Below are positions 391 to 35,200 of a stretch of 64,000 nucleotides of DNA, piece by piece. Both the position numbers and the translations under genes were made by a program. Each line of letters starts with the position of its first letter. The first letter of the stretch is position 1. Below the pieces are notes generated by a model. That model was not told the origin of the DNA, made no database searches, and saw only the letters and a list, made by a program, of their open reading frames with translations. Origin of the DNA: Laetmonice hystrix (taxonomy: Eukaryota); NCBI GenBank assembly GCA_965235115.1, contig OZ249436.1:14632001-14696000 (forward strand), written 5' to 3'.

Positions 391-3300
391 TTACCACGTT
401 GGTTCGTCAAACAACTTCTGTTCTACAACAAATACACAAAAAACAATACTACCCGGTCAGATCATACCTTTTCTTTGCTCAAAGTCAAGTGTATCTATAT
501 AAGGCGAAACGTGAAATTCTTTGTTTCTCAGAAATACTACAGTTCAAAGAGTTCATTTACGAAACTGGTTTCAGGACCCCAGGAAACCCCGTGAACGTTA
601 CATGCAAGTTACATAATACTGAGACCCATTAGATGCTACATATCATGGTAGTGTCAGATACTTTAGCTGCAGATCACTTACCTGTGCTACTTGTTGCAAG
701 TTTGGCCTTCTTTAATGGAACACCTTAAAAGGAAGCAACAGATTTTTGACGACATCTAGAGATGCAGGAACAATGAAAATGAGACAGCCATAGGGAACAG
801 TGTAATTTTATTGGCAGCATTAAAGAGTTGTTAGAAATCGTACCTATATCCTCTGTGGTATCTAGTATAGCACTGGCTCCGTTACTGTCCTCTTGGTGGG
901 TCTTTTTAGTTTTCTCAGTGGTTGTATCATCTACAACTGCTGCCTCATCCTCCTCCGGGATGGATGGGATCTTGCTATTTGTATACGGAGAACTCCCTCT
1001 GAAAAGGTTGTAAAAACATCAACATTCCATTCATATACACGGACATTGGTTGGTTTTTACTGTAATTATCCAAATTAGTCTCTTGATGCAAAATGAATAT
1101 ATGATCCAGTTCACTAGTAGATAACTAAATTTAGACACTTTTAAAATGGTGCACTCTATGATGGCCGATGATCTGATCTATCTTAACTTTACTTTCAAAC
1201 ATTTCCTTACTCGTAGCTACGCTTCCTTTTGGCACGTATGTCAACATCAGATGTGGGCATCTTGCGTTTCACTTGCTGTGGTGTGATTGGGTAGTTAGCG
1301 ATCTGCTTCCTTTTGATATATGTAGCGTATGGCATCACACGGAAGATATCACTGGCATCCAACTGGTCCATGACTACAATAACATTTTATTACACTGAAA
1401 ACTCCATCATATTGCTGAGAATTTGGATAGCTCTAAGATTCTACTTATTAAACTCCAACAGTACAAAGGTGTTCAGGGAGATAATGATGGGTGCATAAGA
1501 CCACTTATTACGAAAGCAAACTACATCTGATCAGCAGCCTTATAAAGTAGACTTACCATAGCTGGCCTGGTCCCTCCTGTTTAATGCTACAAAGGCCGAT
1601 GTGTCATCTAACCAGGCAATTTGTACATTTCCTGAAAAGCCAAAAAAGCGTTTACTGTGGTACTTTCTGTTTGTCGAAACATATTTATCTCCAAAGTATC
1701 TCTGCCCACCAAATGCAGTGACATCTATATGTCATTCAGAGAACTGGCTGTTTGCAGTGACACATCACGTAAACCCTGATGAACAGAGAGACTTACCAAA
1801 TGAACTGAAGACATTTGAGATATCGGACGCCTTCCAATCCTTGGGGAAAGCGATGTGAAACACGTGGTGTCTGGGTGGCATCACTGCAACATATAAAAAT
1901 ATATATCATCTTTCACAAACACTGGCCTCGGTCTGCAACATATGGTGTCCGGATAGGTATTAATTCCACGAAAATCAAGCAATGTTCACAATTCTACAAT
2001 CAGCACTATAGGCTGGTGGATGAAAATTGCATATTTACCAACTACAATGTACTTTATAAGATTTCAAGAATGTAGTATCAGAACCTTTCTGATAGCAGGG
2101 ACTCCTTAACAAGCTCCATACTATAAAACCTTTAACTCACAATCTGTTGCTGCGAGATTCAAGTAAGGAATGTCAGAGACCCTCATCAGGAAAAGCCTGT
2201 GTGAAGAACAATAACAGCTCATTGTGAAGTCACAATTTATATGGTAGTAACATTACCATCTCTAAATCTTGCTTCAGATAATAGCAGTGCTGTAACATAG
2301 GGGCTGCAATTCTCATCTTATAAGTTATTTCTTAGCAGTAGGTTTCTGAAAAAACATTTCATTTCTTGTACCCACTGCACCATCAACTAAACACACAAGG
2401 TGGCAATCAACCTTGGGCATGATTGAGAAGACTCTAGTCTGTTTATATTTAATCTGTCTTGAAGAAAGATGTCTTACTCTACTATGAATGAAAAATGACA
2501 ATGACACAAGAGATCATAATCATAATCTACTAGGTAAATATATCAGGTATAAAAGGCTTTGCATGAACCTCTGCTCACTAAAACCAAAAACATTAAGTTT
2601 GACAGACATGGCTTACTGCCCAGTACACTAGATTACCCTCCTTTCAAATACAGCTTGAACCAAACTACTCACTTGTTGAGGAACGGTTCCATCAGAGGTG
2701 ATGATGGTGATACTACACTCTGTGGGGGGTCTTGGTAAGAACCCAGATGGTTGGCCATACTGAGGAAGCACAGACCTGTGATGTAGGCATCATACCCAGC
2801 CTCATGGAGACATTCATTCTCTGTATTATAACCTGGCACGTCCTCTGAGGACACTGCAATCAAACAAGTCTCTTAGCATCGGCTTAGTACAAAATTAAAA
2901 TTCTTGAGATCTAAAGCATTCTGTGCACAAACTGTAAAATACTTGTGCACGCAGATTTACACTCAATAACATGTGATTATGTCACACTGCCTTATTTGCT
3001 AACTTCTCTCTCTCTCTCTTGAAGAACCAGTAAATGAAGGACATACCAACGTCAGGCTTGATGAATGGCTTTTCCTCCAACAACTTTCTTAAGGATCCAA
3101 GCCCTGTGCTGATAATCCGCTCCTGTAAATAGCAAAACTATTTCAGCCAGACCTAGGATTACACAAAAACACCAATCAGCTACTACTGTACCTTCAGATG
3201 GGCAAGCGTCATACAATCAAGACTAGTAAGTTGCACAGATGCCAAACCACCTGGGCCAAATGGGTACACATTTTTTTTGGCCCGAGTGGCCACTACTAAC

Positions 3301-6300
3301 TGACCTCCAATTTGTTTTATTCAATCATAATAATTTATGGCAGGAGAAATTTCTATAGAAATCTAGCACAGATTTCTACAATTAATATTCTTAAATTATT
3401 AAGAGCCCCCTCTATGAATAGCATCGTGACACCTGTATTTACTTATCTTATTTTCTTCTTCTTTTTTCAAAACATAGAAATTACAAAAAATTATTTTCAA
3501 ATGAAATATTTTGTTAGGCAAAAATATTCTTCCAGTCATGGACAAAATATAAATTCTTTCAAATTTTGCTTCTCACAAAATAATATAATATACCAACCAC
3601 TGTCCTACCTTGAATGGATGTGTGCTTGCCATTAATTTAGTGTCTAAAACCCGGGGAAATATGCATGATGTTAGCATTTTGAATTCTTCATAGTCCTGCA
3701 AGAAAATCAAGTGAATATTAATTGAAATGCTACATTAAGTTGCAATAACTCTACAGAAATAAATAGGTGTTTCTAGTTACTCTGCATTGGTTTTTCAAGA
3801 TCATGGTAAAATGCCACGTTGATGACATCAGGAAGGTGTGTCCAAGACTCAAACCAGCAATATGAATCAGGGACTAAAGCCAAAACGTTGGGACAGTACG
3901 AGAATAATAAGAAAACAGGCATCATTTATGATAGCAGAGAGACAAGTACTAACCTCTGGTAGTGGACTTCTGAATCGATCAATGATGTGCATTAGATCCA
4001 ACATCATATTGTGTCCAACCACAAGTTTACCCTGCAAGAGACGATTTTTTCACATGAAAAAAGACAGAGAAAGACACACAGAAAAAAAACATCTATAGAT
4101 TGCAAAGTACAAACTTGTCTCACCGATTTCGAGATCATGGAAACAACTTTACTGAAGCCCACAGCATCATCTAATTCTTCCTGCAAAGAATAAAATCACG
4201 TTTTTAGAAAGAGGCCATCAGTTTGTTTTCTTTCACAATAAGTCTTTACTTCATGTCAAGTTTCAATGACTAAACATAGTATACTTTCTTGTATAATTCA
4301 AATTAGCACATGCTGGCACCACACAAAGTATCGTTATGCTTTCATAATGTCACTTTTGACAGGTAAAAATATAACTTTAGATTTCCAGCAATGTGATCAT
4401 GTAGATATTGCATTTATCAGTCACAGTAAACTCATGGCCCATTATCAGGGGCATAAAGTAGTACATGGAATACCCACTAAGGCACTTAAACTGTAGTATG
4501 TACACTCTGTAAACTCTGTAAAAACATGGCTCACTGTTTCGAGTTCACGTTTCCTTTCTTCTCTTTTCCTAAAATCAGCTTCACTCTTAACTTGAGTAAC
4601 AACAATGTAACGAGTCTTGTTATCTCCAACTGTCTTAGTCACCAAGTGTACACATGACTGGAATCTGTTTCAAGTAAAAATAACGCAACATTATGCACTA
4701 TTAAATGTTAAAATATGTTCAGAAGGCAACAATACATTAACCAAAATATTTCAAATTGGGATTCAACCTTGCCACAAAAAAAAAGTAGCTGTGGTGTTTA
4801 TTAGTCACCACAAATATCCAGACTTACTCTCAGTACACTACATCAGCTATTGATTTCTTCTGTAACTGATTGTTTCAACACTTTAATGGTAAAGAATGAC
4901 ACTTTCTACATAGTTTCATGCATCATTCACTGAGATATTTTTATATGTATTACTATAAAAACAACACAGGTTAAAAGGAGGTAGCATAATATATCACAGG
5001 GCTCGAATTAACTGGATTCGCATTGCAATTTGCATGCAAAAATCAGTCTATTGCAAATCAAATTAAAGATGAGTTGCAAAATATTGCTTATTACTGCTTC
5101 TACAAGCCAGATATCTCAGTAATTATTGCATATCAAAATTTTTAAAGTATTTTGAGGCAATTCGAGCCCTGTATCAGAAAAATAAAGCAATCAGTGAGTA
5201 TCTCTCATTTCACAGAAATGAAGAAAGCTAATGAAATTCAACATTCCAGTTGCCTGTTGTCACCATGAAGCGAACGTCTCATGTCTGGTTGTTGACCTAG
5301 CATTGCCTTGAACAACCAATTAAACTTGTTTGTTCATCACCCGATGAATTTACTTTCTGAATTTACAGCCTAATTGGCTGTTCGATTCAATGCCAGGTCA
5401 ACATCCAGCCATAAGATGATCGCTTCATAGCTAAAACAGGCAACTGAAACATTAAATTTCATTAGATTTCTCCATTTCTGTGGGAATACAATGATTGATT
5501 TCTGTAGTCTAAGCCGGCCTTATCTAACCTAACAGCCCATGTCTGCATTTTGGAGTCATTAAAATGAGAGATACTCGGTGATTGCTTTAAACATGTAGGA
5601 ACAAGGTTGTTGAAAACTATGAAAATTTACCGGAGGGAAACTGTTTGATAGATGAGTTTCCGTAGGTAGGCGTTGCAGGGAGGCAAATGAATGGATTCTT
5701 CATCTGTCCTCAAGAAAGCATCAATTTTCTGGCTGCAAATCGGTTGAAAACAGGGTACATGTGGTACCCCCATTTTATTATCAATATGGTTCTCATCAAT
5801 TACCTTTTTAGGTTTAAAATTACATACAACTTTGGCTCAGGCTGATGAAATTATCCCTGCTGACTAGAGTATAAAATGTCAGTATTCAATGTACGAGGCT
5901 AAAGTAAAGCAGCTCAACAGTCACCTAACTCTGTCACAGTAATGGACAAAAGTGTTTTGTCCCTGTGAAATAACCATTAGCAGCCTGACGCGTTTCGTCC
6001 ATCAACTGAAAATCAGTGTTATGATAGTCAGCGTGGACTCATCAGAGGCACTGGTTTATCCACTCCACCCCAGGCTGTTGCCTGAGCTCAACTGAACTTT
6101 CAAACCATCACAGAAAATGTTTGGCCACCCAACAAACATTTCTGTTCCAGATGGGTGGCCAAACATTTTCTGTGATGGTTTGAAAGTTCAGTTGAGCTCA
6201 GGCAATGGTTATTTCACAGGGACAAAACACTTTTGTCCATTACTGTGACAGAGTTAGGTGACTGTTGAGCTGCTTTACTTTTAGCCTCGTACAATGAATA

Positions 6301-9300
6301 GAGTATAAAATGTCAATTATCTGAAATCAGATCTAGAAAAGATAACTTCGAGGTTACATAGAATCTAACATTGAGGGTGAACTAAACCAAAATGAAAAGG
6401 GAACAAGAAACAACAGAGGAGTAACTCTTATAGACATCTTACCAGATACCATCAATGAAGTCTTTATGCTCATCTGGGACGATGATTGGACCTTTTGACC
6501 GATCACCTGTTGGTGTTGTGAAAGCTGGAGATGTCATCTGTAAGCTTTGCTGCATATGTTTCTGTTCAAGTTTTTCACGAAGCCTTTGTTCGTCATTTGG
6601 GGCCAAGTAAGAGATTCCTGGATGTATCCAATTGAAAGGTGTAATCATAAATGTTTTGACTGGAAATATTATTCAACTTATAATTACTATGTAAATATCT
6701 ACTAGAGCTAGGGCACTGGGAAAATAGATCTGAAAAGTTCCAGATAAAGTCCCTACATAGGGTTACTGTACCATACTTCCCTTCAGTTTCAGACACTATT
6801 ACTTTCCTTATACCGGTAGTTTATAATTTGTTCACTGCTTAGTATTCAAGCCATGGCCAACCACTGTGTGCTAGCCATTTCTAGTCACGGATAATTTGTA
6901 GCACTGGCGATTAATCTCATCCTATATCAAACTTGTATTAAAAACAGGCAAATGCAATATTATAAGTTTATAAAAAAGGAAGCTAATGACCAGGAATGAA
7001 TAGTTTTCTCACTTAAGGCAGGGTGGTGCAACATATGATTGTTCCTACTAGTAACCTGAGATTTATCGAGCTGTGCCCTCTATAACAATTGTGCCCCAGA
7101 AATCTCAAGCTGTGCAGTGAAACTGTTAACCATTCTTCAGCTTAATAAATTTCCTTTAGAATTCATTATGAATTTCTAGTTGATGCGTTTGAGAACACTG
7201 ATGCAAACATTGTAAGAACTTACCATCTCTGAATAATTTATTAAAGTCAAATCCCTGGCTGATCAAGAATTCAATACTTGAGGTCTGCAAAAACAAATAC
7301 ATGTACAGTAAGTCAGTCAAATTGGGCATTCATGACCCAGGTACAGTAATCAGAAAGGCTGTTCCATTTATGTGAATAAAAACACTCAGGTACACTTGAT
7401 TATGTACTTCTACCAATACATCACGTCATTACTGGTGAACAACAGTACATTACCTGACACAAAAAGCGGCTATCTGGTGCTAGTTTGCTAAAGGGACGTG
7501 GAAATATGTAGAAGTTGAAGGCCTCAGAGACATGCCTGTGAATGCAAGCAAATGCGCCTGAATGAAGGTAACCCTGGCAATAACAGGACTTGAAAAACTA
7601 GTTAATTTCATTTATCACACACTCTATCATTGGAAATTTCAGCTTACAGTCAATAATATTCAGTGTTAGAGTGAGTATACCGGTAGTTTTTACTTGACAT
7701 TGTTCCAAATATTCAAAATTCAGCAAAAATTTCAAGCATTCAAAAACAACTTACTTTTTAGTCTCCGAGTCATACTGAAATGCACACACACCAAACTGGA
7801 CTAACAGGAAGTCCATAGCACCCTGTAAATGAAAGGCTTTGAAATTATGCTCTATTGCAATGGTATCAGAGTTTGGGGCCCAGTCTTACTAAACTCCTTA
7901 TTATTAACGTTTCATCTTCATCTTGAATAGCAGGCAACTGGTTAATAGTATTAAATATACAGTGGTTCCCCTCTAAGAGATAAATAATAATTTTTATAAT
8001 TGACAATGACCTTAAAATGCAGAACCAAGCACTGTTACCAATATAATCCTTTCCTTTAAACAAGTCCTGCACACTTTTTGGAACCTGCTTAACCACATTA
8101 CTCTCATTCTATCTCATTTAGACCAATACTGGGTTGTTGTTTTGGTCTGTGTTTGTGGGTTTTTTTGCTGAGAGCATACAGTTACACAACTTCGTGACTT
8201 CAAGAATCATTGTTGTCCAAATGCCCAAGCAGCAGAGTGGAATGGAAAATTAAAAATCTGTAAACCCATGAATATTGAAAATTGAACTTTGCAAAAATAC
8301 GGAATTCTACTGGAGGCCTTGGGTTAAACTCTTTTCTTTCATGGCACTACCACAAAGTTTATGAATTTAAAGAAAAATATGGCTCACCTGTCTTAACTTG
8401 TGGTATCTTTCCTCAGGCGTATCAAATGCATGGATATTGCATCCAGCAACACCGAGACCTTATAATACATTTATAACAACATCTTGTCAAGAAAGATTCC
8501 TAAAACGCCATCTCATTCAGAAATGCATGTGTCCCTTCCTGTAAAATCTGTTCATTTTTTCAATATCACAGAAAACTGATGCTAAATTAAGACATGTACC
8601 GGTAAATTATGATACATGTATTTATATGCCTGCAATAAATTTGATCTTAATTAAATCCAGAGTAAAAATTAAGGCTGCACCGTTGTAGAATAAGGATTTG
8701 GTTACTCAATTATTAATGTCATACCGGTGCAGAGAATCAATTGTAGATTGTTACCTGTAAATTCTCCATCTATAGCGAGGAAATCTGCTTTTGAAACAGC
8801 CTTCTCTACCTGTTCCAGGCTTTGTTTGAAGTCTACAGGGGGAAAACAAGTAAAAGTACATGTTACTGTTAGATCTACATCACTTACTTTAGTACATGTG
8901 TACATACAGTAACTTACCCCCCTCAGGGCTGGCCAATTTTTCATTTTAACAGGACAGGACTGACCCTCTACTCGAGGGTCAGATGTGGGTCCCATAGAGA
9001 AAATTTTCGGTGTTTCTCATGCAATATAACAGGGTATCTTTCGCTTAAACTTTGCACGTACCTTCCCATATAGAATTTTTTCAGTGCTTTTCATGCAAAT
9101 AAAATAGCCGGGTATCTTTTGACTAAACTTTGCACCCCCCCTCCCAAGAGCTGGAAATCTAGATAATCAGATGAGAAAGGTTTGCATAACTGGACAATAT
9201 ATTAATATTTTACTGGTATTCCTGTGGGTTCTGTTGAATTTAGACAAGGTTTTGCTGCTACGCTGTTCAAAAGACACACTACACAAAAAAAGGTTGCCGA

Positions 9301-12649: not shown

Positions 12650-12930
12650 CTCATCAGAGATGAAATTGTCCTGATTATCCTCAGAAATCCATGTTTTTTT
12701 TCACAGAGACACTGCCCATTGACATAGGACTAGCCTCCCCAAAAACCACCAGGAATTTTTCCAGTTGGCATTCTCATGCCTGCCCTCATAGACTCTATTA
12801 TGTGAGCATTTAGTCTGTTTGGCATCCAGATAAATATTAAACAAGAAATGTTTGAAATCATCCCCAACTTTATGCCATTAGAATCAATGCTGAATGAACA
12901 CAAAGAAATATGTTCTCTTCTTTGAGGGTC

Positions 12931-15900
12931 ATGGAGCAGGAAGAAGAGCAGGATTCAAGAGAGATCTCAACAGATTTGGAAGAAGAACAAGACAATGAAC
13001 AGAACAAAGATGAACCTGAGGAGTTTGCCAATGCGGGGTCACCTCTTGATAAAAAAGTCCAACGTAGCATATCAGAAGATTTTATTTGCCCATGCTGCTA
13101 CGAAATTTTGATTGATCCCACCACATTGAATTGTGGTCATAATTTCTGCAGACATTGTATTGCTTCGTGGTTCTTGTCCAGTAAACGTCAAGAGTGTCCA
13201 CAGTGTCGGCAGGAGTGGACAGGTAAACCACAGGTCAACCGGACACTAAGGTATTGTGCAGAAAGAATGCAGTAATATTTTTAGTCCAATCTTAAGGATT
13301 AAATTTTGACCAAGCTTGGAAAGTAGTCTTTTTTTTCGCTTTTAATAGAGGGTGTCCCCCAAAAGAGTCCAGGCCAAACCAGGCAACCTCAGGATCTATG
13401 CTCCCCCAGATCCAGAACAGGAATCTTCTTACATTCTTCTTCCAGAACAGGAATCTTCGTACAGTCTTTAATTGATCAAAACCAGTTAAGTGAATCAAAA
13501 GTTGTCAGTTTAGGTGCAGCAAGGTCAGCCCTCAACTAGCAGTGACTGACAGTGACTTTTCTCTTTCTTTTTTTTTCATTACATTTTCTTTCTTTTCTTT
13601 ATTTTTGTTCTCTTTGCTAAAGTTGCATGAACTAGGGTGTGACTTTGCTGCACCCAAGATGACATAACTTTTGATTCGCTTTCCAGATTTTGATGAAATA
13701 AAGATTTTTTCATGCAAGAAGATTTTCAGGATCTGGGAGAACATAGATGCGAAGCTTGCCTAGTTTGGCCTGGACATTTTTTGGGGACATCCTGTATATA
13801 GAGCTGTATGTTTACTGCAAATTCTTCTTGATATAGATATAGTTAATTAAAAAATATAAATAAAAACTACTAATATAATGGTCTACTTTGCAATATGATA
13901 CTAAAACACATTTTCTTTATGTTGTGTCCAGAAGTATTAGAATGATTAAATTTTCCTGTTCCCACTGGCAGGTCGATGATAGAGACGCTAAGAAGTGAAC
14001 ATATGAACATGCGTCTCAATTCCATGGATACAGCACATGTTAGGAAGGTTGTTGATCAGTTTGAGGCACATTTAGCAAGTAGCACTTCTCCTGGCCGTAT
14101 ACCGTCTTCACTTTACAACCCGGTCAAGCAAATTCTCAGCAATGCCACAATCTACCTGGTAGGTCAGAGGATCTTTTGGCCCCCAACTGGGGGGCTTCTA
14201 ATTTACCGTACATCTGGACGTCATGCCATATGTATGTCAGGCTGTCCACCATATTATATTCATATTATACATATTCATACTCACAGACCATAAACAAATC
14301 TTTATTACTGAAATATTTGTAAGCATTTAGCCATAACAAGTCAGAAAAGTACATAGAAAGTTGTGTAAACAGCCATTTACAACCTTTTAGGTGGTACATT
14401 AAAGGGTGGGGGGGGGATGTCCCTTTAGGGCTCTGTACTTATCCTATTTTCCCAGAAATGTTTATAGACAAAGTCTGCTGTGTTTCTGGTATGGATTGTG
14501 CTAACACTAAGTCCAGTGGGTCATGTAGATAAGATAACACGTGGTTATTTGGGGGCTAGTGGGAACATACGAGTTTTTAAATGAAACCCCAATAGGATAC
14601 CTCACCTTTGGGGATGAATAAGATAACCAGATGACAACCTATTAAAGGATCTTTTTTACCTTTAGAGTGCTGTTGACCAACTCTCTAACTTGGACTTTAA
14701 ATAACATGCCATAAGTCATCTTTAAAGCCTAAACATTATAAATGAAAGTATGACACCAGTAACGTTTACTGGTAATTTATAACTCCTTACATGTTTAATG
14801 TAAGCCTATATAACCAACGAAACTCTTCCAACTAACCCCACACAATGTTCCAGCTTACCCGGGTACACCATTGTGTGGGGGTAGTTGGGACCGTGTGTCC
14901 CTCTTGAGTTGGGGGGGGGGGGAGGTTTCGGCAGGTTAGGGTCATTAGGCATCTTAATGAGTTTGACTGAATCAAGGTGATCATGGGTGTGAGCTTGAAA
15001 AGGTTTAAGGCCGGGGAGTCTCAGGCGTACTAAAAGAGACCTATTCGGTGTGAGGTCTAAGTAGTCCAACCACGGGGGTTCCGTAAATTATGTAAATTTT
15101 TCTGACGATACTAAGAGGCTCCCAGGGTGTGGGTGTTATTTCTTTTTTGGTGACAAGAGAAGGCATATGAGGGGTAATAGATTTGCCAAAAGTACGCATA
15201 ATTCCTGGACCCACAGATAATTAAGGCTATGACGCACTGGACAAAATCGGGGCCGATCACGTCCTGATTCGGGACGTGATCGGGCGCCAGTGGGTCATAG
15301 GCAGTCGGGACCCAATCGGCACGAAACACTCCTGATTGCCCGCCGATTCAATATCAAAAAAGTTTGATATCTGACCAGCGCCGATCGCCTCCCGGCCCGA
15401 ACGGGCACCAAACGAATTGTCACCAATCGGGTCGGGGAGCGCAGTGTGTTATAGCCTTTTGTCCCTATCAGAGTATCCAGTTGGGGACTATGGCTCTGAC
15501 GGGGTCTTGTTATAATAAAGATTGGTATTTTCTAATGTGTTTTGAACTCCTGTCATGAGATGTTACCTTTCCTGTCTGAAGGTACTCTCATGTATTATCT
15601 CCTGCAGGTAATCCTGGTCCTGCAATACTTTGCTGGATCTCTGTGGTCAGATCCAATCAGTCAGAAGCCAATTACGAAATGGACAGTTGATGATGTTTCT
15701 AAGTGGTTAGTCTCCGATGTGGGAGCTTGGACAGAAAGGGAACTTGTACCAAGATTTAGGGAGCAAAAGATTGGTATGTCACCAATACATGTACAGAAAT
15801 ATAGTGACTTCTTTTTCTAAAATTATGTTTGAAAATACATGGAATTGTAACATTTTGAGAGATGAGTAAAGTCAAAATGTTGCTTGAGATTTGAATTCCT

Positions 15901-17337
15901 TATGTTATATCAAAAACACTGGGTTGGATATTTGATGTTAAATGACATTAAAGAAATACTTTATCTTTCAGATGGCTGGCTTCTCGTTGCCATGACTGAG
16001 GATGACATAGAAACTTTGGTTGATGCAACCGATTTACAGAGGCGAGGGTTCCGAATGGCACTATCTGTAGCACAGGATCTTGGGGTTAAAGCCCCTAGCA
16101 ACCTTTGGGAGTACAAGGTGGGGACATATTGGTATCATGGCGAGATACTCGTGATTGTATTTGTGTCACTCTATCTGTAGCAATCCCTGTACACTTACAC
16201 TCGCAAGCATTCACACAGAACCTAACTCATTTCCACTGTGTTAATCATTAGTTTATCCAAAGTCTAGAATGCCATGAGGAGTAGTGATAATGGTGTTATA
16301 GTAAGATTGATACAGTCAGACCTCATGTTTTACAATCCCAACACATTTTAATGGGCACCAAGCTGTGATTTTATTGTAAATTTTATAATCTATAGCCATT
16401 GTACTGACTTCTCTTTCTCCATCTACAGAACATGTATTTGGGTAGGTCTGTGTTCCTGATGTCTGTAGTATGGCTCCAACCTCGAATGACGCTGATTTAC
16501 CTCCTATTATTTGAATACAACACTGTCTTCTTACCAATCATCCACACCAGCGCACCTGTATATGAGGATATAGCTGACATCAACTTGTACATAGCAAAGG
16601 TAATATGGGATTCAAAGAATCATTTGGTGGGGGTTAAGGGTCCCAGACTTTATCGTTATTTTAGAATCCAAGTGTAAACATGAACAAAACAAATACATGT
16701 ATTGTAATGTTGGATTTGTGTCCAGGTTTTGAGAAGTTTGGTCGGTGGGAACATAATGAAAAGTTATGATTGGCATGTGTTACAGCTTCCCTCGCCGAGA
16801 GTATCGCAGTGGGTTATCCTCGGGGTCAAGGCAATATTCTGCCCTTGTCTCATAGTGATAGAGTTCTCCAGGCGCATGAAGGAGTGGTTTAGCTGGCTTT
16901 TCATTCTCGCCAGCTTTCTCTGGTTCAGCTATACAGATGCTATGTGGCTGAAAGGTCTACTCGCCAATAGGTGAGTGCAAGTGTTTTGCATTATGACTTT
17001 AAGATGTACAGCAATATTTTTTGCCAGAAGTTAGAATTTAAATGACTGGTAGTCACTGCGTGTTTTCCAAATATGTCCAGGTAGAGCCATTATATAAATT
17101 ACAAGGGATCTTGCCAAATGTCAAATTTATTCTGTTATTTTCTTTTAAAGGCGGAACTGGCTCCTCTACAGTATGCAGGCACTGAAAAACTTCGTCCCAT
17201 CTCTATTTGTGTTGGTATTCTGGCCAATCTTACCAACTTTCCTGATTAATCTCGGTTTTAATTTCATGTTTTATGTATTGCCCTTGACATACCTTGTCGC
17301 CATGTACTATCATGCATTAGCTTTCGTGGCCCGTTAA
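12931..17337 (+). CDS. BFAR: Bifunctional apoptosis regulator (C3HC4 RING E3 ligase, SAM domain, multi-pass membrane C-terminus), 7 coding exons, ~453 aa
   Basis: Exons total 1362 nt: 12931-13250, 13972-14158, 15608-15773, 15972-16117, 16429-16599, 16786-16970, 17151-17337. Motifs: RING CPCCYEILIDPTTLNCGHNFCRHCIASWFLSSKRQECPQC; SAM KPITKWTVDDVSKWL...; LGVKAPSNLWEYK; YLLLFEYNTVFLPIIHT; FWPILP. These match recalled human BFAR (NPTTLNCGHSFCRHC, LGVKPPQNLWEYK, FLPFIHT). Confidence 0.93.
15223..15458. mobile_element. Non-autonomous TIR element (MITE), superfamily unassigned, in BFAR intron
   Basis: Imperfect 18-bp TIR (AAGGCTATGACGCACTGG vs AAGGCTATAACACACTGC, 15/18 identity). The interior is rich in CCGATC/AATCGG sub-repeats and small hairpins. 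No clear TSD. Confidence 0.65.
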
Positions 17338-25780: not shown

Positions 25781-26204
25781 CATCAGTGACTGTCAGGCCT
25801 CTGACAGCCAGCTGGGGATCGGTTGTCCCAGCCGACTCAGCGGTCCGCCATCAGTGACTGTCAGCCAGTTCCTCTGACAGCCAGCTGGGGATCGGTTGTC
25901 CCAGCCGACTCAGCGGTCCGCCATCAGTGACTGTCAGCCAGTTCCTCTGACAGCCAGCTGGGGATCGGTTGTCCCAGCCGACTCAGCAGTCCGCCATCAG
26001 TGACTGTCAGCCCTCTGACAGCCAGCTGGGGATCGGTTGTCCCAGCCGACTCAGCGGTCCGCCATCAGTGACTGTCAGCCAGTTCCTCTGACAGCCAGCT
26101 GGGAATCGGTTGTCCCAGACGACTCAGCAGTCCGCCATCAGTGACTGTCAGCCAGTTCCTCTGACAGCCAGCTGGGGATCTGTTGTCCCAGCCGACTCAG
26201 CAGT
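25781..26204. repeat. Six tandem 68-73-bp copies of the NDST C-terminal coding end, including the stop codon
   Basis: Units start at 25781, 25849, 25922, 25995, 26063 and 26136. The unit at 26136-26204 encodes [21 protein letters not shown]; the other five lie downstream of the stop in transcript orientation. Confidence 0.92.
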
Positions 26205-29200: not shown

Positions 29201-32200
29201 TGCGAGAAGTCTGGGACCTACCGGTATACAGACGGTGCCTTACTAAGCGGGGGCCCGGTGACCTACTCCAAAGGACCCGGCCGGGCGGTCTCACCATGAT
29301 TCCCCGGTGTACGAAGCCCTTCCGCCGGCGGGCCGGCCTCAGATGAGGGTACTCCTCGGTACTGGTGACTTTCACCTTCCACACCCGTTTCCAGGCCTCG
29401 TAGAGCTGCTCGTGGACGGGAAACACTCCCGAGTGGTGAGGGGCCACGGCATACGACGAGTTGACGGCAATCCCGCGTCTCTGGAGGAAACAAACACAAC
29501 TCGGTCAATGACATCCTCTCTCATATAGTCTACTCTCTCTATAATAATCGTAGGCATCCTAGGGCAGGTCTAATCGTAGGCGTACCAGGGCAGGTCTAAT
29601 CGTAGGCGTCCCAGGGCAGGGGAAGGGCAGGTCTAATCGTAGGCGTCCCAGGGCAGGGGGAAGGGCAGGTCTAATCGTAGGCGTCCCAGGGCAGGGGGAA
29701 GGGCAGGTCTAATCGTAGGCGTCCCAGGGCAGGGGGAAGGGCAGGTCTAATCGTAGGCGTCCCAGGGCAGGGGAAGGGCGGGGGGAAAGGCAGGGGGAAA
29801 GGCAGGGGGAAGGGCAGGAGGAAGGGCAGGGCGCGCTTATCATCCAGACCCAATCTAGGAGAAGGATTAAATTTTATCAAACATTATTATTTTGAAACAC
29901 CGGTACCGGTAATCAAAGTTGAAAATGTTCTTTTTAATGCTTGCTAGTCGGTCCCCCATTAAGGAAAGCCCCCTCTCTCGAAATTCCTGGGAACGCCTAT
30001 GATACTGAAATGTAAATTTTAGTTTTTGGACCTTGTTATGGTCTTTTACTACTTTCATTGAACCATAATCACAAAGTAACACTGTCCAGATGTCGTTATG
30101 TTATATATCATTGAGTACAATTGTAGATTGATCGAAATGGACTTGCTGATGTAGCAAACATCAATTCCCTTCACACGTGACCACTATAAAGACATGATCA
30201 GCAATGAGAAGAAGACCTTGGTATCTATAATTGGTCGCCGGCCCCGGGCCCCTACCATCACCCGTGTCTTGGGCCCGATGCACCGCGTATCGTTGTCGGT
30301 CAGTTCACCAGAGATGTTATCACTGGTTATTGCCAAACTTCTGAGCCCCACCTTCCTCCTCCGTCAGCCCTATCGGGATTCAGAGACCATAGGGGGAAGC
30401 TATCACTTCGTACTTTGCATCCTCAGTTAGTCCATGTATTTCTATGTCAACTCTAGCTCTGCTGCCTCTCGGCGTAAATATTAGACCTATTTCTCGAGGT
30501 CATAGATCCAGGGAGTGTAATCTTGTCTCGATCTCTTCAGTCAAGATTGAGCCGAGGGGTGAACAATGTGTCTCCAGTGTGAAGGAGGGTTGATGCTGAT
30601 CTCAGACCAGGGTGTCTCCAGGAGAGAGAAATCGGAGGCCTGTCCTATATCAGATCTCACCGCGGGGCTTGGGACGGGAACCAATGCAGTATACGCTGGG
30701 AGTAGGCACCCTCGTCCCACATCAGGATTGCGGGGAAGACATCCCGTCCGGGAGGCAATTTGTGCCCTGTCCCACATCATGACGGGGAGGACAACAGCCC
30801 GTCAGGGAGACAATGTGCGCCCTGTCCCACATCATGTCGGCTGGGACGACAGCAGGTCAGGGAGACAATGTGTGCCCTGTACCACATCATGATGCATGGC
30901 TGGGACGACAGCCCGTCAGGGAGACAATGTGCGCCCTGTCGCACATCATGACGGCTGGGACGACAGCCCGTCAGGGAGACAATGTGCGCCCTGTCCCACA
31001 TCATGACGGCTGGGACGACAGCCCGTCAGGGAGACAATGTGCGCCCTGTCCCACATCATGTCGGCTGGGACGACAGCCCGTCAGGGAGACAATGTGCGCC
31101 CTGTCCCACATCATGTCGGCTGGGACGACAGCCCGTCAGGGAGACAATGTGCGCCCTGTCCCACATCATGTCGGCTGGGACGACAGCCCGTCAGGGAGAC
31201 AATGTGCGCCCTGTCCCACATCATGTCGGCTGGGACGACAGCCCGTCAGGGAGACAATGTGCGCCCTGTCCCACATCATGACGGCTGGGACGACAGCCCG
31301 TCAGGGAGACAATGTGCGCCCTGTCCCACATCATGATGCATGGCTGGGACGACAATGTGCGCCCTGTGCCACATCATGACGGCTGGGACAACAGCCGGTC
31401 AGGGAGACAATGTGCGCCCTGTCCCACGTCATGACGGTTGGGACAACAGCCCGTCAGGGAAACAATGTGCGCCCTGTCCCACATCATGACGGCTGGGACA
31501 GCAGCCCGTCAGGGAGACAATGTGTGCCCCGTCCCACATCATGACGGCTGGGACAACAGCCCGTCAGGGAGACAATGTGCGCCCTGTGCCACATCATGAC
31601 GGCTGGGACGACAGCCCGTCAGGGAGACAATGTGCGCCCTGTCCCACATCATGTCGGCTGGGACGACAGCCCGTCAGGGAGACAATGTGCGCCCTGTCCC
31701 ACATCATGACGGCTGGGACGACAGCCCGTCAGGGAGACAATGTGCGCCCTGTGCCACATCATGACGGCTGGGACAACAGCCGGTCAGGGAGACAATGTGC
31801 GCCCTGTCCCACATCATGACGGCTGGGACGAGAGTCCGTCAGGGAGACAATGTGCGCCCTGTCCCACATCATGATGGCTGGGACGACAGCCCGTCAAGGG
31901 GGCAATGTGCGCCCTGTCCCACATCATGACGGCTGGGACGAGAGTCCGTCAGGGAGGGCAATGTGCGCCCTGTCCCACATCATGACGGCTGGGACGACAG
32001 CCCGTCAAGGGGGCAATGTGCGCCCTGTCCCACATCATGACGGCTGGGACGACAGCCCGTCAGGGAGACAATGTGCGCCCTGTCCCACATCATGATGCAT
32101 GGCTGGGACGACAATGTGCGCCCTGTGCCACATCATGACGGCTGGGACAACAGCCGGTCAGGGAGACAATGTGTGCCCCGTCCCACATCATGACGGCTGG

Positions 32201-35200
32201 GACAACAGCCCGTCAGGGAGACAATGTGCGCCCTGTGCCACATCATGACGGCTGGGACGACAGCCCGTCAGGGAGACAATGTGCGCCCTGTCCCACATCA
32301 TGTCGGCTGGGACGACAGCCCGTCAGGGAGACAATGTGCGCCCTGTCCCACATCATGACGGCTGGGACGACAGCCCGTCAGGGAGACAATGTGCGCCCTG
32401 TGCCACATCATGACGGCTGGGACAACAGCCGGTCAGGGAGACAATGTGCGCCCTGTCCCACATCATAACGGCTGGGACGAGAGTCCGTCAGGGAGACAAT
32501 GTGCGCCCTGTCCCACATCATGATGGCTGGGACGACAGCCCGTCAAGGGGGCAATGTGCGCCCTGTCCCACATCATGACGGCTGGGACGAGAGTCCGTCA
32601 GGGAGGGCAATGTGCGCCCTGTCCCACATCATGACGGCTGGGACGACAGCCCGTCAAGGGGGCAATGTGCGCCCTGTCCCACATCATGACGGCTGGGACG
32701 ACAGCCCGTCAGGGAGACAATGTGCGCCCTGTCCCACATCATGATGCATGGCTGGGACGACAATGTGCGCCCTGTGCCACATCATGACGGCTGGGACAAC
32801 AGCCGGTCAGGGAGACAATGTGCGCCCTGTCCCACGTCATGACGGTTGGGACAACAGCCCGTCAGGGAAACAATGTGCGCCCTGTCCCACATCATGACGG
32901 CTGGGACAGCAGCCCGTCAGGGAGACAATGTGTGCCCCGTCCCACATCATGACGGCTGGGACAACAGCCCGTCAGGGAGACAATGTGCGCCCTGTGCCAC
33001 ATCATGACGGCTGGGACGACAGCCCGTCAGGGAGACAATGTGCGCCCTGTCCCACATCATGTCGGCTGGGACGACAGCCCGTCAGGGAGACAATGTGCGC
33101 CCTGTCCCACATCATGACGGCTGGGACGACAGCCCGTCAGGGAGACAATGTGCGCCCTGTGCCACATCATGACGGCTGGGACAACAGCCGGTCAGGGAGA
33201 CAATGTGCGCCCTGTCCCACATCATGACGGCTGGGACGAGAGTCCGTCAGGGAGACAATGTGCGCCCTGTCCCACATCATGATGGCTGGGACGACAGCCC
33301 GTCAAGGGGGCAATGTGCGCCCTGTCCCACATCATGACGGCTGGGACGAGAGTCCGTCAGGGAGGGCAATGTGCGCCCTGTCCCACATCATGACGGCTGG
33401 GACGACAGCCCGTCAAGGGGGCAATGTGCGCCCTGTCCCACATCATGACGGCTGGGACGACAGCCCGTCAGGGAGACAATGGGCGCCCTGTACCACATCA
33501 TGATGCATGCCTGGGACGACAATGTGCGCCCTGTCCCACATCATGAGATTGTGCGCTCAATGTGCGCCCAGTCCAACACCAGGCTGGCTGAGACTACAGC
33601 CCAGCAGGACCGTATGCCCCTCACGATCAGTGGCCAGAGTTGAATCCTCTCAGTCAACACCATTTGTCATGTCGACCACAGGTCTCTAATACATGACGTG
33701 GCCTTTCGTCCATCCTACAACAAGTCACCGTGCGCCTCCTCGCATTCCCAGCCTAATACTAATCGCTCAACAAATGCTTTTCCATTGTTGTTGAACCGTT
33801 GTGACAAGTAAACCACATCGACCAACACTCCCCGCGCGCACACCACAGAGCACCCGGTCCATACGTTATGCAGTGCTTGCAGTGCTGTCCGAACGGTGAG
33901 GCCGTGGTACAATAATCGGAGCCATTATCCGCGAGCCGTGGCCCACATCGCCAATCAGCCGACCTCCTCGATGGGAATAGTAATGAGGTGTGAATTAACC
34001 ACGGTGCTGGCCACCAGGGTGACCGATGGTCGGATCCGTCCGAAAACTGTATCCACTCAAACCAGGCGCCGTCAGGTGGCAAACCTATCATTTTACCTCT
34101 ATATAATGTGTCGGATCCTGCCCAAACTTCCTACGAAGACCACGGAGTCATAAACAACGCCTAATTCATAAACACACGGAGATAAACCATCCCTGAGAAA
34201 CAAACTGCAGAGTATTGGAATAACCTGCTTGTGCAAAACGTTTTTGTGGTAAGCAGAGCAAGTGTCATTCCTTAGGATTTCTATAGGATAACTTTCTCGT
34301 AGTATCTTAGTCCAATCAATGGGAAATAAGCTGGTTATCCCTCTCCTATGGCGGCTGTATCCTGTAAAAGTCACTGCTTCTACGCCACTTGTCTCTCAGA
34401 CTGTCACAGCAAAACAGACAGGATGTTGTGGGTGGTCCTCCAAGAGAGTGGTAATAATATTAAGTGCCTGAATATGATGGGAATATTTGCTAAAATGATT
34501 AGGTATTACAGTGAACTTGGAAACGGCATTTACATTTATGACATTTCTGCTTGTTTTGCTAACAATGGGAGTCTCCGCAGACAACCACAATACCATTTGT
34601 CTATAGGTCTGGTCACGGCACCAGATTATAGTTCTCCCCTGGAGACGATGGGCCTCCTGGACTCGCTCTCACCGCAGTGACGCGGGTTGAGCCAGGAGTG
34701 AGACAAGAGGGCTTACCACTCCCACGCTCGCCGTCCCTCCACTCACCAACAACAAAACAGAAACTTCCACCGAGTAAAGCTGGAATCACCACCAGTCAAC
34801 CTGTTGCAACCAACAGCGGGACGAGGGCCAAACCTTTGTGCTATTTCAATAACCCGGAACTGGTGATCTAATTATAGTGTTGTGGATGAATACTCAAGGC
34901 TTTTTTCACCCCAACATAATCCAAACTCTTTAAACTTGTATAAAGTCCACACTGCTCCAAACGGTGCTTCTACATGTACAACATTAACAACCCAATGACT
35001 ACTGCATCCAGTTTGGGAACACGGTGCTGGTACAGTTGTACCTCCAAATTCAGTAGGTTTGAATTGTATTACTCCTATGTGGAATATTAGACTGGATATA
35101 TTCAAAGGGACTATACGTTTCATCGCCAATTTAAGTCCATTCCTCCCTGCTTAGACACAGAACGTACAGATAAATGCAAACGAAGAAAGAAGACAGAGAA

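Follow-up and report, generated by a model that had tools for sequence, protein, structure and literature searches.

Does the hammerhead ribozyme motif in an intron of PARN act on the transcript that contains it, or did it arrive there as cargo of a mobile element? An initial annotation had described an intact ribozyme and a possible retroelement-responsive switch, and we consider both claims over the window, i.e., the whole 64-kb stretch of DNA analyzed. The hammerhead-ribozyme sequence is genuine and lies on the sense strand of the PARN intron. Every conserved type I core position (C3 U4 G5 A6 N7 G8 A9, G12 A13 A14, the A15.1-U16.1 pair, and H17) is present in a three-helix arrangement, with an open-ended helix I of 4 bp and the G10.1-C11.1 pair closing helix II. 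The core, the GUC triplet, the 5-bp stem II, the 4-bp stem I, and the ACGCGU palindrome had all been listed by the initial annotation, and each was found where it had been placed (Table 1).

A structure descriptor specifying CUGANGA, a G-C-closed helix II of at least 4 bp, GAAA, a palindromic helix III, U-H, and a helix I of at least 4 bp matches a single site when both strands of the window are scanned, and 300 dinucleotide-preserving shuffles gave it no match. Chance matches are expected at approximately 2e-4 per 64 kb by analytic estimate (about one per several hundred Mb), a figure that falls to approximately 1e-6 per 64 kb if helix II has to be GUCC/GGAC, exactly as in the consensus. There is no second hammerhead within the 64 kb, the three further matches to the pattern CTGATGA...GAAAC being without helices.

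The covariance-model search that had been suggested as a check gave a divided result. An Rfam scan of the whole window at the gathering threshold returned no match; in targeted low-threshold scans only, the core aligned to Hammerhead_1 (RF00163) at 17.6 bits, below the gathering value of 34, with E-values of 0.23 on 501 nt and 0.056 on 121 nt. No position shown in the alignment departs from the consensus, and a 33-nt insertion stands against the 5-nt loop 2 of the model, with loop 3 empty. The 25 fixed positions, among them those of the arbitrary sequence GUCC/GGAC in helix II, equal the Rfam consensus. The low score is attributable to the 32-nt "loop 2," as the shortfall accompanies this insertion and the empty loop 3 and not mismatches in the core; the locus thereby illustrates how a hammerhead variant with a long insertion in helix II can escape a covariance-model threshold. 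The apparent loop in fact folds as an extension of helix II (14 bp in all), and the helix II domain reaches -14.2 kcal/mol (z = -4.39), a stability equaled by 0 of 200 shuffles. An accidental consensus match in ordinary intron sequence could be argued from the subthreshold score, from an E-value that is unconvincing at the scale of the whole window, and from the recurrence of the bare descriptor in every several hundred Mb, but the empty shuffles, the agreement of the fixed positions down to GUCC/GGAC, the structured helix II domain (z = -4.4 in rounded form), and the position of the motif inside a mobile-element-like insertion make coincidence exceedingly improbable.

Table 1. Features of the PARN intron, the foldback insertion, and the hammerhead motif (window coordinates)
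Feature	Position	Strand	Details
Flanking exon with R3H	5732-about 5630	-	Pfam
PARN intron with insertion	5733..6443	-	711 nt; donor GT 6443-6442, acceptor AG 5734-5733
Flanking exon with CAF1	6618-6444	-	Pfam, exon map
TSD, left copy (TAGAGTATAAAATGTCA)	5865..5881		17/17 identical to 6299-6315
Outer arm, 3'-terminal part of sense copy	5883..5978	-	97.9% identical to inverted 6204-6300
Hammerhead-bearing segment	5979..6077	-	99 nt; confined to one foldback arm (arm comparison)
Inner arm, 5' part of sense copy	6078..6131	-	54 nt; 100% complementary to 6152-6205
Spacer at head-to-head junction	6132..6151		20 nt; partial repeat of adjoining arm sequence (CAGAAATGTTTG)
Inverted element copy	6152..6300	+	Without the 99-nt hammerhead segment; AA microhomology (2 nt) at breakpoint
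TSD, right copy	6299..6315		Direct repeat of 5865..5881
Type I hammerhead motif	5983..6049	-	Sequence read; RF00163 alignment at 17.6 bits; sole descriptor match
Helix I, 5' strand GCCU	6049-6046	-	Sequence read
Core CUGAUGA	6045-6039	-	Sequence read
Helix II, GUCCA with UGGAC	6038-6034 with 6001-5997	-	G10.1-C11.1 closing pair present
Helix II domain	5997..6038	-	Basal GUCCA/UGGAC, 5 bp, then irregular hairpin; 14 bp total
Core GAAA	5996-5993	-	Sequence read
Helix III palindrome ACGCGU	5993-5988	-	Sequence read
U16.1 and C17	5988 and 5987	-	GUC triplet; predicted cleavage 5987/5986
Helix I, 3' strand AGGC	5986-5983	-	Sequence read

That the motif is intronic and in the sense orientation with respect to PARN, as originally proposed, is borne out by PDB matches to PARN, by the Pfam CAF1 and R3H domains, and by an exon map, all of which place the gene on the minus strand. 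The host intron is plausibly intron 7, since six coding exons were mapped upstream, together with an inferred ATG exon. Identity to other PARN proteins reached ~59% at most, with that of Lingula as the best match, and the comparison sets the animal apart from vertebrates and places it weakly among lophotrochozoans. A sense orientation is a one-in-two outcome. The insertion and one copy of its target-site duplication (TSD) account for 434 nt of the 711-nt intron, and searches of the literature for hammerheads in combination with PARN found nothing relevant.

The hammerhead is part of an inverted, head-to-head duplication of 418 bp (positions 5883-6300), flanked by a perfect 17-bp TSD. The arms are 98 to 100% identical, with fully complementary segments of 54 nt and 78 nt, and apart from the 99-nt hammerhead-bearing segment they differ by one mismatch and one indel. 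The sequence contains neither a poly(A) tail nor a simple-repeat tail at the insertion. A TSD-flanked foldback with arms this similar marks the insertion, as judged from its sequence, as an apparently recent mobile-element event and not a conserved feature of the gene. Perfect palindromes are a known class of assembly artifact, and inverted structures of the Penelope type have been noted as troublesome for assembly (PMC8557442, PMC3846280), so the palindrome might be conceived of as a long-read foldback chimera of a locus whose true state is a single, noninverted copy. We regard this as highly unlikely: the 418-bp structure is small and asymmetric (its arms differ by the 99-nt segment, a single mismatch, and a single indel), is cleanly bounded by a TSD, and lies within a well-assembled gene, and a chimera would create none of these features.

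The architecture of the PARN-intron locus is that of a well-known kind of retrotransposon-type foldback insertion carrying a hammerhead. At 17 bp, the TSD exceeds those left by cut-and-paste DNA transposons and is in keeping with target-primed reverse transcription. Insertions of the Penelope-like element (PLE) or retrozyme type have strewn thousands of solitary hammerheads over animal genomes, with many landing in introns. PLEs are 5' truncated at insertion, often with an inverted, 5'-truncated copy immediately upstream in head-to-head orientation, and they display palindromes at junctions, microhomology-mediated internal deletions, TSDs, and hammerheads in a terminal pseudo-LTR (PMC8557442, PMC3846280, PMC4209133); most PLE hammerheads are single, dispersed motifs that have been interpreted as truncated elements (PMC4209133). 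The locus presents the same combination, i.e., a 5'-truncated copy, an adjacent inverted and 5'-truncated copy, a TSD, and no poly(A). Its hammerhead is therefore probably the cargo of a 5'-truncated, nonautonomous retroelement of the PLE or non-LTR-retrozyme type that inserted into the PARN intron, and it is likely silent there.

Such an insertion could have proceeded as follows. A short, 5'-truncated retroelement would have entered a PARN intron of ~277 nt by target-primed reverse transcription, duplicating 17 bp of the target and leaving two head-to-head copies of its 3'-terminal region, an arrangement for which self-priming or template switching is the proposed origin. The sense copy would have retained the hammerhead that elements of this kind bear in their terminal repeat, and the inverted copy would have lost exactly the 99-nt hammerhead domain, most simply if the polymerase jumped from one side of the closing helix to the other at its base, at the 2-nt microhomology. 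In the original element, a double hammerhead may have formed between adjacent or identical copies through an intermolecular 6-bp helix III and an intermolecular helix I. Read in this manner, the insertion, its TSD, the head-to-head copy, and the structure-bounded deletion would provide a tidy natural case for self-priming or template jumping in a poorly understood class of retroelements.

A few features sit less comfortably with a retroelement origin: the TSDs cited for Penelope are 8 to 10 bp in length, versus 17 bp here (PMC3846280); a structured, 32-nt extension of helix II is undescribed in canonical metazoan hammerheads; and the hammerhead-free arm could reflect a secondary insertion of the 99-nt unit.

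This last point belongs to a DNA-level account, in which the foldback is a foldback/MITE transposon or a template-switch inverted duplication and the 99-nt hammerhead unit was inserted secondarily into one arm. Its long terminal inverted repeats are indeed near perfect, the hammerhead is confined to one arm with an AA at both junctions that is readable as a 2-bp duplication, and the 99-nt segment has a 7-bp terminal inverted repeat of its own (CAGCCTG...CAGGCTG). We nonetheless consider this account unlikely, in that the TSD lies far beyond the range of known cut-and-paste superfamilies and we know of no 99-nt mobile hammerhead unit. In a constrained fold, moreover, an extension of helix I may pair bases of the segment (AUAAACCA) with arm bases UGGUUAU outside the 99 nt, hinting that segment and arm evolved jointly as one unit, and TSD-flanked, head-to-head inverted copies are already documented for PLEs (PMC8557442, PMC3846280).

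Searches for relatives of the retroelement returned little. Within the window, no ORF of at least 60 amino acids contains an RT YxDD box or a GIY-YIG signature, the three ORFs lacking an assignment have no Pfam matches, and neither homology nor linkage of the insertion to an RT plus GIY-YIG EN was found; a sensitive blastn search with positions 5840-6340 recovered no copies beyond the self and inverted-arm matches. Beyond the window, metagenome contigs gave no match to a hammerhead pattern with a long loop or to a 21-mer specific to the family, and prokaryote genomes and viral contigs gave none to a general pattern or an arm 23-mer, zeros that carry little weight because the collections searched are essentially nonanimal. 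Exact look-ups in a protein collection found none of the ORFs of the element or of the neighboring exons, and strings of the element sequence led in the literature to an unrelated simulation paper only. As no second copy was found in the collections searched, the element is a putative repeat-family member, as judged from its architecture. The locus contains one hammerhead and no tandem array, making it at best a "solo" derivative of a head-to-tail retrozyme. A circularly permuted retrozyme, in which CUA would close helix I, was also considered for the 99-nt unit and was set aside, since the 5' strand CAGCCU does not adjoin C3.

Whether the ribozyme could be active depends on how the transcript folds. 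Helix III consists of 1 bp and a CGCG tetraloop in the monomer and of 6 bp in the dimer; the expectation in the initial annotation of a weak monomer is thus retained, but with a stem III of 1 bp in place of the claimed 2 bp. Likewise, "intact" applies to the catalytic core and not to the ribozyme at large, given the 1-bp helix III of the monomer, the 4-bp helix I, and the lack of an evident canonical loop 1/loop 2 pair or its contacts in this hammerhead. In minimum-energy folds, a competing 7-bp helix between CAGCCUG (6077-6071) and CAGGCUG (5987-5981) takes in C17 and closes the 99-nt segment, and in a 111-nt context the active monomer fold is predicted to fall short of the minimum-energy fold by 5.2 kcal/mol in stability. 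The whole element is predicted to fold as one long hairpin of -310.6 kcal/mol, in which the hammerhead is a closed side branch. (Subthreshold matches to miRNA families on positions 6086-6197, all far below gathering, are generic to any long, perfect hairpin and were discounted.) Conserved intronic ribozymes have a stable active monomer, whereas the predicted fold here pairs the cleavage site in the alternative helix.

Dimerization alters this picture for short constructs. With 82 nt, the double-hammerhead dimer (-48.7) is near optimal relative to the unconstrained dimer (-49.4) and to two monomers (-43.6), in agreement with a dimer-dependent design, but with 111 nt two separate monomers (2 x -36.5) are favored over the dimer (-70.5), noting that thermodynamic predictions give no certainty on cotranscriptional folding or protein-assisted cleavage. 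The proposal that this is a type I hammerhead with a minimal palindromic helix III, typical of hammerheads that act as dimers in PLEs, retrozymes, and satellites, accords with published descriptions (PMC4209133, PMC7229834). Comparable monomers do poorly in vitro: for a single min-HHR, cleavage was undetectable (PMC4209133), and axolotl monomers were 6 to 22% cleaved in one hour, with dimers being efficient (PMC7229834). Standing alone as a monomer whose helix III has 1 bp, embedded as a side branch of a ~150-bp hairpin and occluded by a 7-bp helix, the hammerhead is most likely catalytically silent or very slow, as far as such modeling can predict. Most likely, the hammerhead is spliced out with the intron and has no effect on PARN.

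The initial annotation had instead envisaged a retroelement-responsive switch, in which the intronic hammerhead cuts the pre-mRNA by pairing in trans with RNAs of same-family retroelements, coupling PARN output to retroelement expression. If the ribozyme did cut PARN pre-mRNA, the locus would assume greater importance, PARN being a central deadenylase, but nothing that we found points there. The fully intact core with its optimal GUC triplet, the sense orientation in the intron, the significantly structured helix II, and the thermodynamic feasibility of a double-hammerhead dimer for short constructs would all suit such a switch, yet we found it unsupported and rate it as very improbable. The insertion is young and TE-like (98 to 100% identical arms and a perfect TSD) and so bears no mark of long-term selection; a partner in trans would need matches to helix I GCCU/AGGC and to ACGCGU, and hence would have to belong to the same family, of which no member was found in the 64 kb; the dimer loses to its monomers in the longer context; the predicted native fold keeps the cleavage site occluded; and bimolecular pairing must outpace removal of the 711-nt intron. 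Also counting against a switch, the one PLE tested biochemically yielded no RNA-seq reads ending at the hammerhead site (PMC11167929), and retrozymes are depleted from introns, which suggests that they are tolerated there and not recruited (bioRxiv 10.64898/2026.07.22.740005). With ~43% of Xenopus retrozyme copies overlapping introns (same preprint), an intronic placement is ordinary.

A more restricted version has the foldback retroelement carrying a hitherto undescribed hammerhead variant (canonical core, 14-bp helix II, 1-bp helix III) that is kept inactive by the competing helix and the ~150-bp hairpin, firing only upon formation of a double hammerhead with a same-family RNA or upon unwinding or editing of the hairpin. 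We give this very little credence, although if it were true, the integrity of PARN pre-mRNA would hinge on retroelement expression. If the reading as silent retroelement cargo is right, the locus is another clean case of PLE/retrozyme-type elements seeding intact ribozyme cores into introns.

Among known systems, the hammerheads in PLE pseudo-LTRs (Cervera and De la Pena 2014, PMC4209133) share with the PARN-intron motif the type I topology, a short helix I (4 to 5 bp), a helix II that is longer than canonical, and a minimal palindromic helix III, which implies that dimers are the acting form, and PLE insertions share the 5' truncation, the head-to-head inverted copy, the TSD, and the absence of poly(A) (PMC8557442, PMC3846280). 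They differ in that the PARN-intron motif has no bulged nucleotide between A9 and G10.1 and has an irregular, 14-bp helix II, as opposed to 7 to 8 bp in PLE min-HHRs. Pairs of PLE hammerheads on opposite strands have been reported 100 to 700 bp apart (PMC4209133), whereas the inverted copy here is without a ribozyme; there is also no RT-EN ORF nearby, and the likeness shown is one of architecture.

Metazoan non-LTR retrozymes (Cervera and De la Pena 2020, PMC7229834; Li et al. 2026 preprint, 10.64898/2026.07.22.740005) have the same canonical core (CUGAUGA-GUCC...GGAC-GAAA) in a small, noncoding element of a few hundred nucleotides with moderate GC content, and their "solo" monomer derivatives, which resemble the PARN-intron element, are spread evenly through genomes, many being intronic. 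Retrozymes proper are head-to-tail tandem repeats with one hammerhead per unit, in contrast to the single hammerhead and inverted duplication of the PARN intron, in which no canonical loop 1/loop 2 contacts are evident. The satellite-2 hammerhead of newts and axolotls (HHR_Amex1 type) is similar in having a helix III of one A-U pair topped with a palindromic tetraloop, and in satellite-2, too, monomers are weak and dimers efficient (PMC7229834). Such satellites are tandem and vertebrate, ~330 bp long, and conserved in their loop-loop contacts, whereas the PARN motif is from an invertebrate, solitary, and extended in helix II.

The intronic ribozymes of amniotes (Hammerhead_HH9, HH10, and the CPEB3 HDV-like ribozyme) likewise place a self-cleaving-ribozyme motif on the sense strand of an intron in a protein-coding gene. 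These three occupy orthologous positions conserved across many species and have stable monomer folds. For the CPEB3 ribozyme, conservation and the monomer fold are described in PMC10919898. The PARN motif, in contrast, resides in a recent TE insertion and has an unstable helix III, and the 98 to 100% identity of the arms argues for a recent origin.

Read 6049 to 5983 on the minus strand (the PARN pre-mRNA strand), the candidate hammerhead ribozyme runs GCCU, CUGAUGA, GUCCA-32 nt-UGGAC, GAAA, CGCGUC, AGGC. None of the invariant hammerhead positions (C3-A9, G12-A14, A15.1/U16.1, and C17) is missing, helix II is closed by G10.1-C11.1, and the cleavage triplet is GUC, with a predicted cut between 5987 and 5986, so that this rereading of the strand bears out the coordinates and description in the initial annotation. 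A structure descriptor (CUGANGA, a G-C-closed helix II of at least 4 bp, GAAA, a palindromic helix III, U-H, and a helix I of at least 4 bp) matches this motif alone on both strands of the window and matches none of 300 dinucleotide-preserving shuffles. By rough arithmetic, its chance expectation is ~2e-4 per 64 kb, or roughly one match per several hundred Mb, and at genome scale the descriptor is therefore inconclusive by itself. In the Rfam Hammerhead_1 alignment, helix II (GUCC/GGAC) and GAAACG..CGUC are letter-identical to the consensus, which lowers the chance expectation by another two orders of magnitude.

Applied to the whole window at the gathering threshold, Rfam does not call the motif. 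Targeted scans give a Hammerhead_1 score of 17.6 bits versus a threshold of 34, because a 33-nt insertion replaces the expected 5-nt loop 2 and loop 3 is empty in the alignment. The lack of a covariance-model hit, which was initially proposed as evidence against the motif, is thus formally half borne out: the score is below threshold, but the cause is structural and the core is not degenerate. The identification as a type I hammerhead with a minimal palindromic helix III, associated with Penelope-like elements or retrozymes and requiring dimerization, is sound. The nominal loop 2 in fact prolongs helix II as a structured hairpin, to a total of 14 bp (−14.2 kcal/mol, z = −4.4), and none of 200 shuffles of this domain folds as well. 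Penelope minimal hammerheads (min-HHRs) likewise have an enlarged helix II, although that of the motif is longer than in the literature descriptions cited here.

The motif is not free-standing intron sequence but lies inside a head-to-head inverted duplication, the element at 5883-6300, in which a 78-nt block of the outer arms is 100% complementary. The element ends in neither a poly(A) nor a simple-repeat tail. The hammerhead-bearing 99-nt segment (5979-6077) occurs in one arm only; the other arm is uninterrupted at the breakpoint, where there is a 2-nt AA microhomology. We found no further element-like sequence within the 64 kb, and no RT YxDD box or GIY-YIG signature in ORFs of at least 60 aa over the whole window.

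The host gene is recognizable from a stop-free minus-strand segment (8705-9016) corresponding to the PARN N terminus (PDB chains 2a1r and 3d45), an RRM segment (1543-1731, minus strand) matching PARN structures 3ctr, 1whv, and 3d45, and matches to Pfam CAF1 and R3H; tblastn with PARN proteins recovers the exons in their proper order along the minus strand. Six coding exons are mapped upstream of the motif-bearing intron, and the first, preceded by a pyrimidine tract, starts at residue 7, with the ATG exon probably further 5', so the designation of intron 7 is plausible. Without the insertion, this intron would measure ~277 nt. The animal is not a vertebrate. The highest PARN identity found (~59%) is to the brachiopod Lingula; a quick maximum likelihood tree strongly supports a position outside vertebrates and hemichordates and weakly (SH-aLRT 88) places the protein beside brachiopod, annelid, and mollusc sequences. 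The top representative match was a Cervus elaphus "PARN-like" model that contains the C-terminal third of PARN twice, which raised its search scores, and that looks mis-assembled or mis-predicted. Directly upstream of the first mapped exon is a 74- to 78-nt tandem duplication (8990-9150, ~2 copies, 76-79% matches), presumably in the 5' intron or promoter region.

The RING-finger gene lies on the other strand from PARN and starts ~4 kb from the 5' end of PARN. We take it to resemble BFAR, which in vertebrates is the head-to-head neighbor of PARN; if it is BFAR, the vertebrate PARN-BFAR microsynteny is kept in this invertebrate. A second ORF tested there has no Pfam match. The first coding exon of the heparan-sulfate N-deacetylase/N-sulfotransferase (NDST) gene is a 360-aa ORF (HSNSD_N, E 2.5e-90), and an intron of this gene holds the large minisatellite, ~17 copies of a 165-mer in which several frames stay open over long stretches.

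Features of the insertion, its host intron, and the rest of the window
Feature	Position	Strand	Description
Outer arms	5883-5978 and 6204-6300		97.9% over 97 positions; one mismatch, one indel
Inner arms	6078-6131 and 6152-6205		54 nt, 100% complementary
Central spacer			20 nt
Flanking direct repeat	5865-5881 and 6299-6315		17 bp, perfect, TAGAGTATAAAATGTCA
CAF1 exon preceding the intron	6618-6444	minus	PARN
Motif-bearing intron	donor GT 6443-6442, acceptor AG 5734-5733	minus	PARN; 711 nt
Exon opening R3H domain	5732 onward	minus	PARN; follows the intron
RING-finger gene	12898-16177	plus	Pfam zf-C3HC4 and related
GC-rich minisatellite	25781-26204		73/214-nt units
NDST gene	26770-57971	minus	spans ~31 kb
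GC-rich minisatellite	29545-29831		26/38/12-nt units
Large minisatellite	30709-33503		55-nt unit, higher-order period 165 nt, 89-92% matches
GC-rich minisatellite	50390-50777		48-nt unit, 8 copies, 98% matches

As a monomer, the motif has a helix III of only one A-U pair, capped by a CGCG tetraloop, a weak design shared with the satellite hammerheads of newt and axolotl (PMC7229834) and with the Penelope "small palindromic helix III" variants (PMC4209133). Two copies can form a double hammerhead through an intermolecular 6-bp ACGCGU helix III and an intermolecular helix I. With two 82-nt constructs constrained solely at helix II and at the helix III between them, the other pairs adopt this topology at −48.7 kcal/mol. 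This energy differs by no more than 0.7 from the unconstrained dimer optimum and improves on two separate monomers by 5 kcal/mol, whereas in a 111-nt context two separate monomers (2 × −36.5) are more stable than the dimer (−70.5). The catalytically competent fold of the monomer lies 5.2 kcal/mol above the minimum-energy fold, and an alternative 7-bp helix is predicted to pair C17 and the helix I 3' strand. Across the full element, the arms fold into a ~150-bp near-perfect duplex (−310.6 kcal/mol), and the hammerhead domain forms a closed branch to its side. Within PARN pre-mRNA, such an RNA is a potential Dicer or ADAR substrate or hairpin-siRNA source. The 29-44 bits that Rfam miRNA models give the central hairpin (6086-6197) fall far short of their thresholds and are what any long hairpin would be expected to score.

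Cleavage by a single Schistosoma min-HHR is undetectable and its dimers have low activity (PMC4209133), axolotl monomers are 6-22% cleaved in an hour and dimers are efficient (PMC7229834), and the one Penelope-like element reconstituted in vitro neither needs hammerhead cleavage nor yields RNA-seq reads ending at the hammerhead site (PMC11167929). Because there is no second hammerhead within 64 kb, this copy is most likely silent or very slow and would be removed with its intron. The initial proposal that it could act as a retroelement-responsive switch, cutting PARN pre-mRNA in trans, is unsupported and very improbable. Such elements are often intronic (in Xenopus, about 43% of the retrozyme copies lie over introns, fewer than intron size predicts [bioRxiv 10.64898/2026.07.22.740005]), sense orientation has even odds, and the near-identical arms and perfect target-site duplication (TSD) are signs of a recent event rather than of conservation. 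Any partner acting in trans would need to share helix I and the palindrome and to be a transcript of the same family, and it would need to reach a high local concentration before the short-lived 711-nt intron is gone.

In all unconstrained folds, a 7-bp helix encloses the 99-nt segment by pairing CAGCCUG at the segment's 5' end with CAGGCUG close to the 3' end. One arm may have been copied from the other by a polymerase, through self-priming or a template switch, and a jump across the base of the compact hammerhead domain would have deleted the segment, which the AA microhomology fits. Part of a rival account makes the 99-nt unit a secondary insertion into one arm; against this, in a constrained whole-element fold, a helix I extension may pair AUAAACCA inside the segment with UGGUUAU just outside it, and pairing across the border would weakly favor a single co-evolved unit.

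Since no relatives were found in prokaryotic, viral, or metagenomic DNA collections, the class of the element is assigned on architecture, not on sequence homology to Penelope-like elements (PLEs): a 17-bp TSD, the lack of a poly(A) tail, two 5'-truncated copies that meet head-to-head at a small palindrome, an internal deletion bounded by microhomology, and, ~100 nt from the element 3' end, a type I hammerhead whose palindromic helix III is minimal. These traits point to a probable PLE or non-autonomous derivative. A MITE or foldback DNA transposon ranks lower because the TSDs of cut-and-paste DNA transposons are far shorter than 17 bp.

The PLE assignment has ready parallels. In rotifers, head-to-head inverted Penelope pseudo-LTRs (pLTRs) with TSDs carry microhomology-mediated deletions and junction palindromes attributed to self-priming (PMC3846280). 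Hammerheads reside in the pLTRs of PLEs, and genomic motifs are mostly solitary, "probably related to truncated PLEs," although some occur as pairs on opposite strands, separated by 100-700 bp (PMC4209133). Animal non-LTR retrozymes, argued to be non-autonomous PLE derivatives, leave "solo" monomers evenly over chromosomes (bioRxiv 10.64898/2026.07.22.740005). The locus is a new instance of this known phenomenon and is mildly unusual in two respects: its helix II is long and structured, and its foldback keeps the ribozyme in one arm only.
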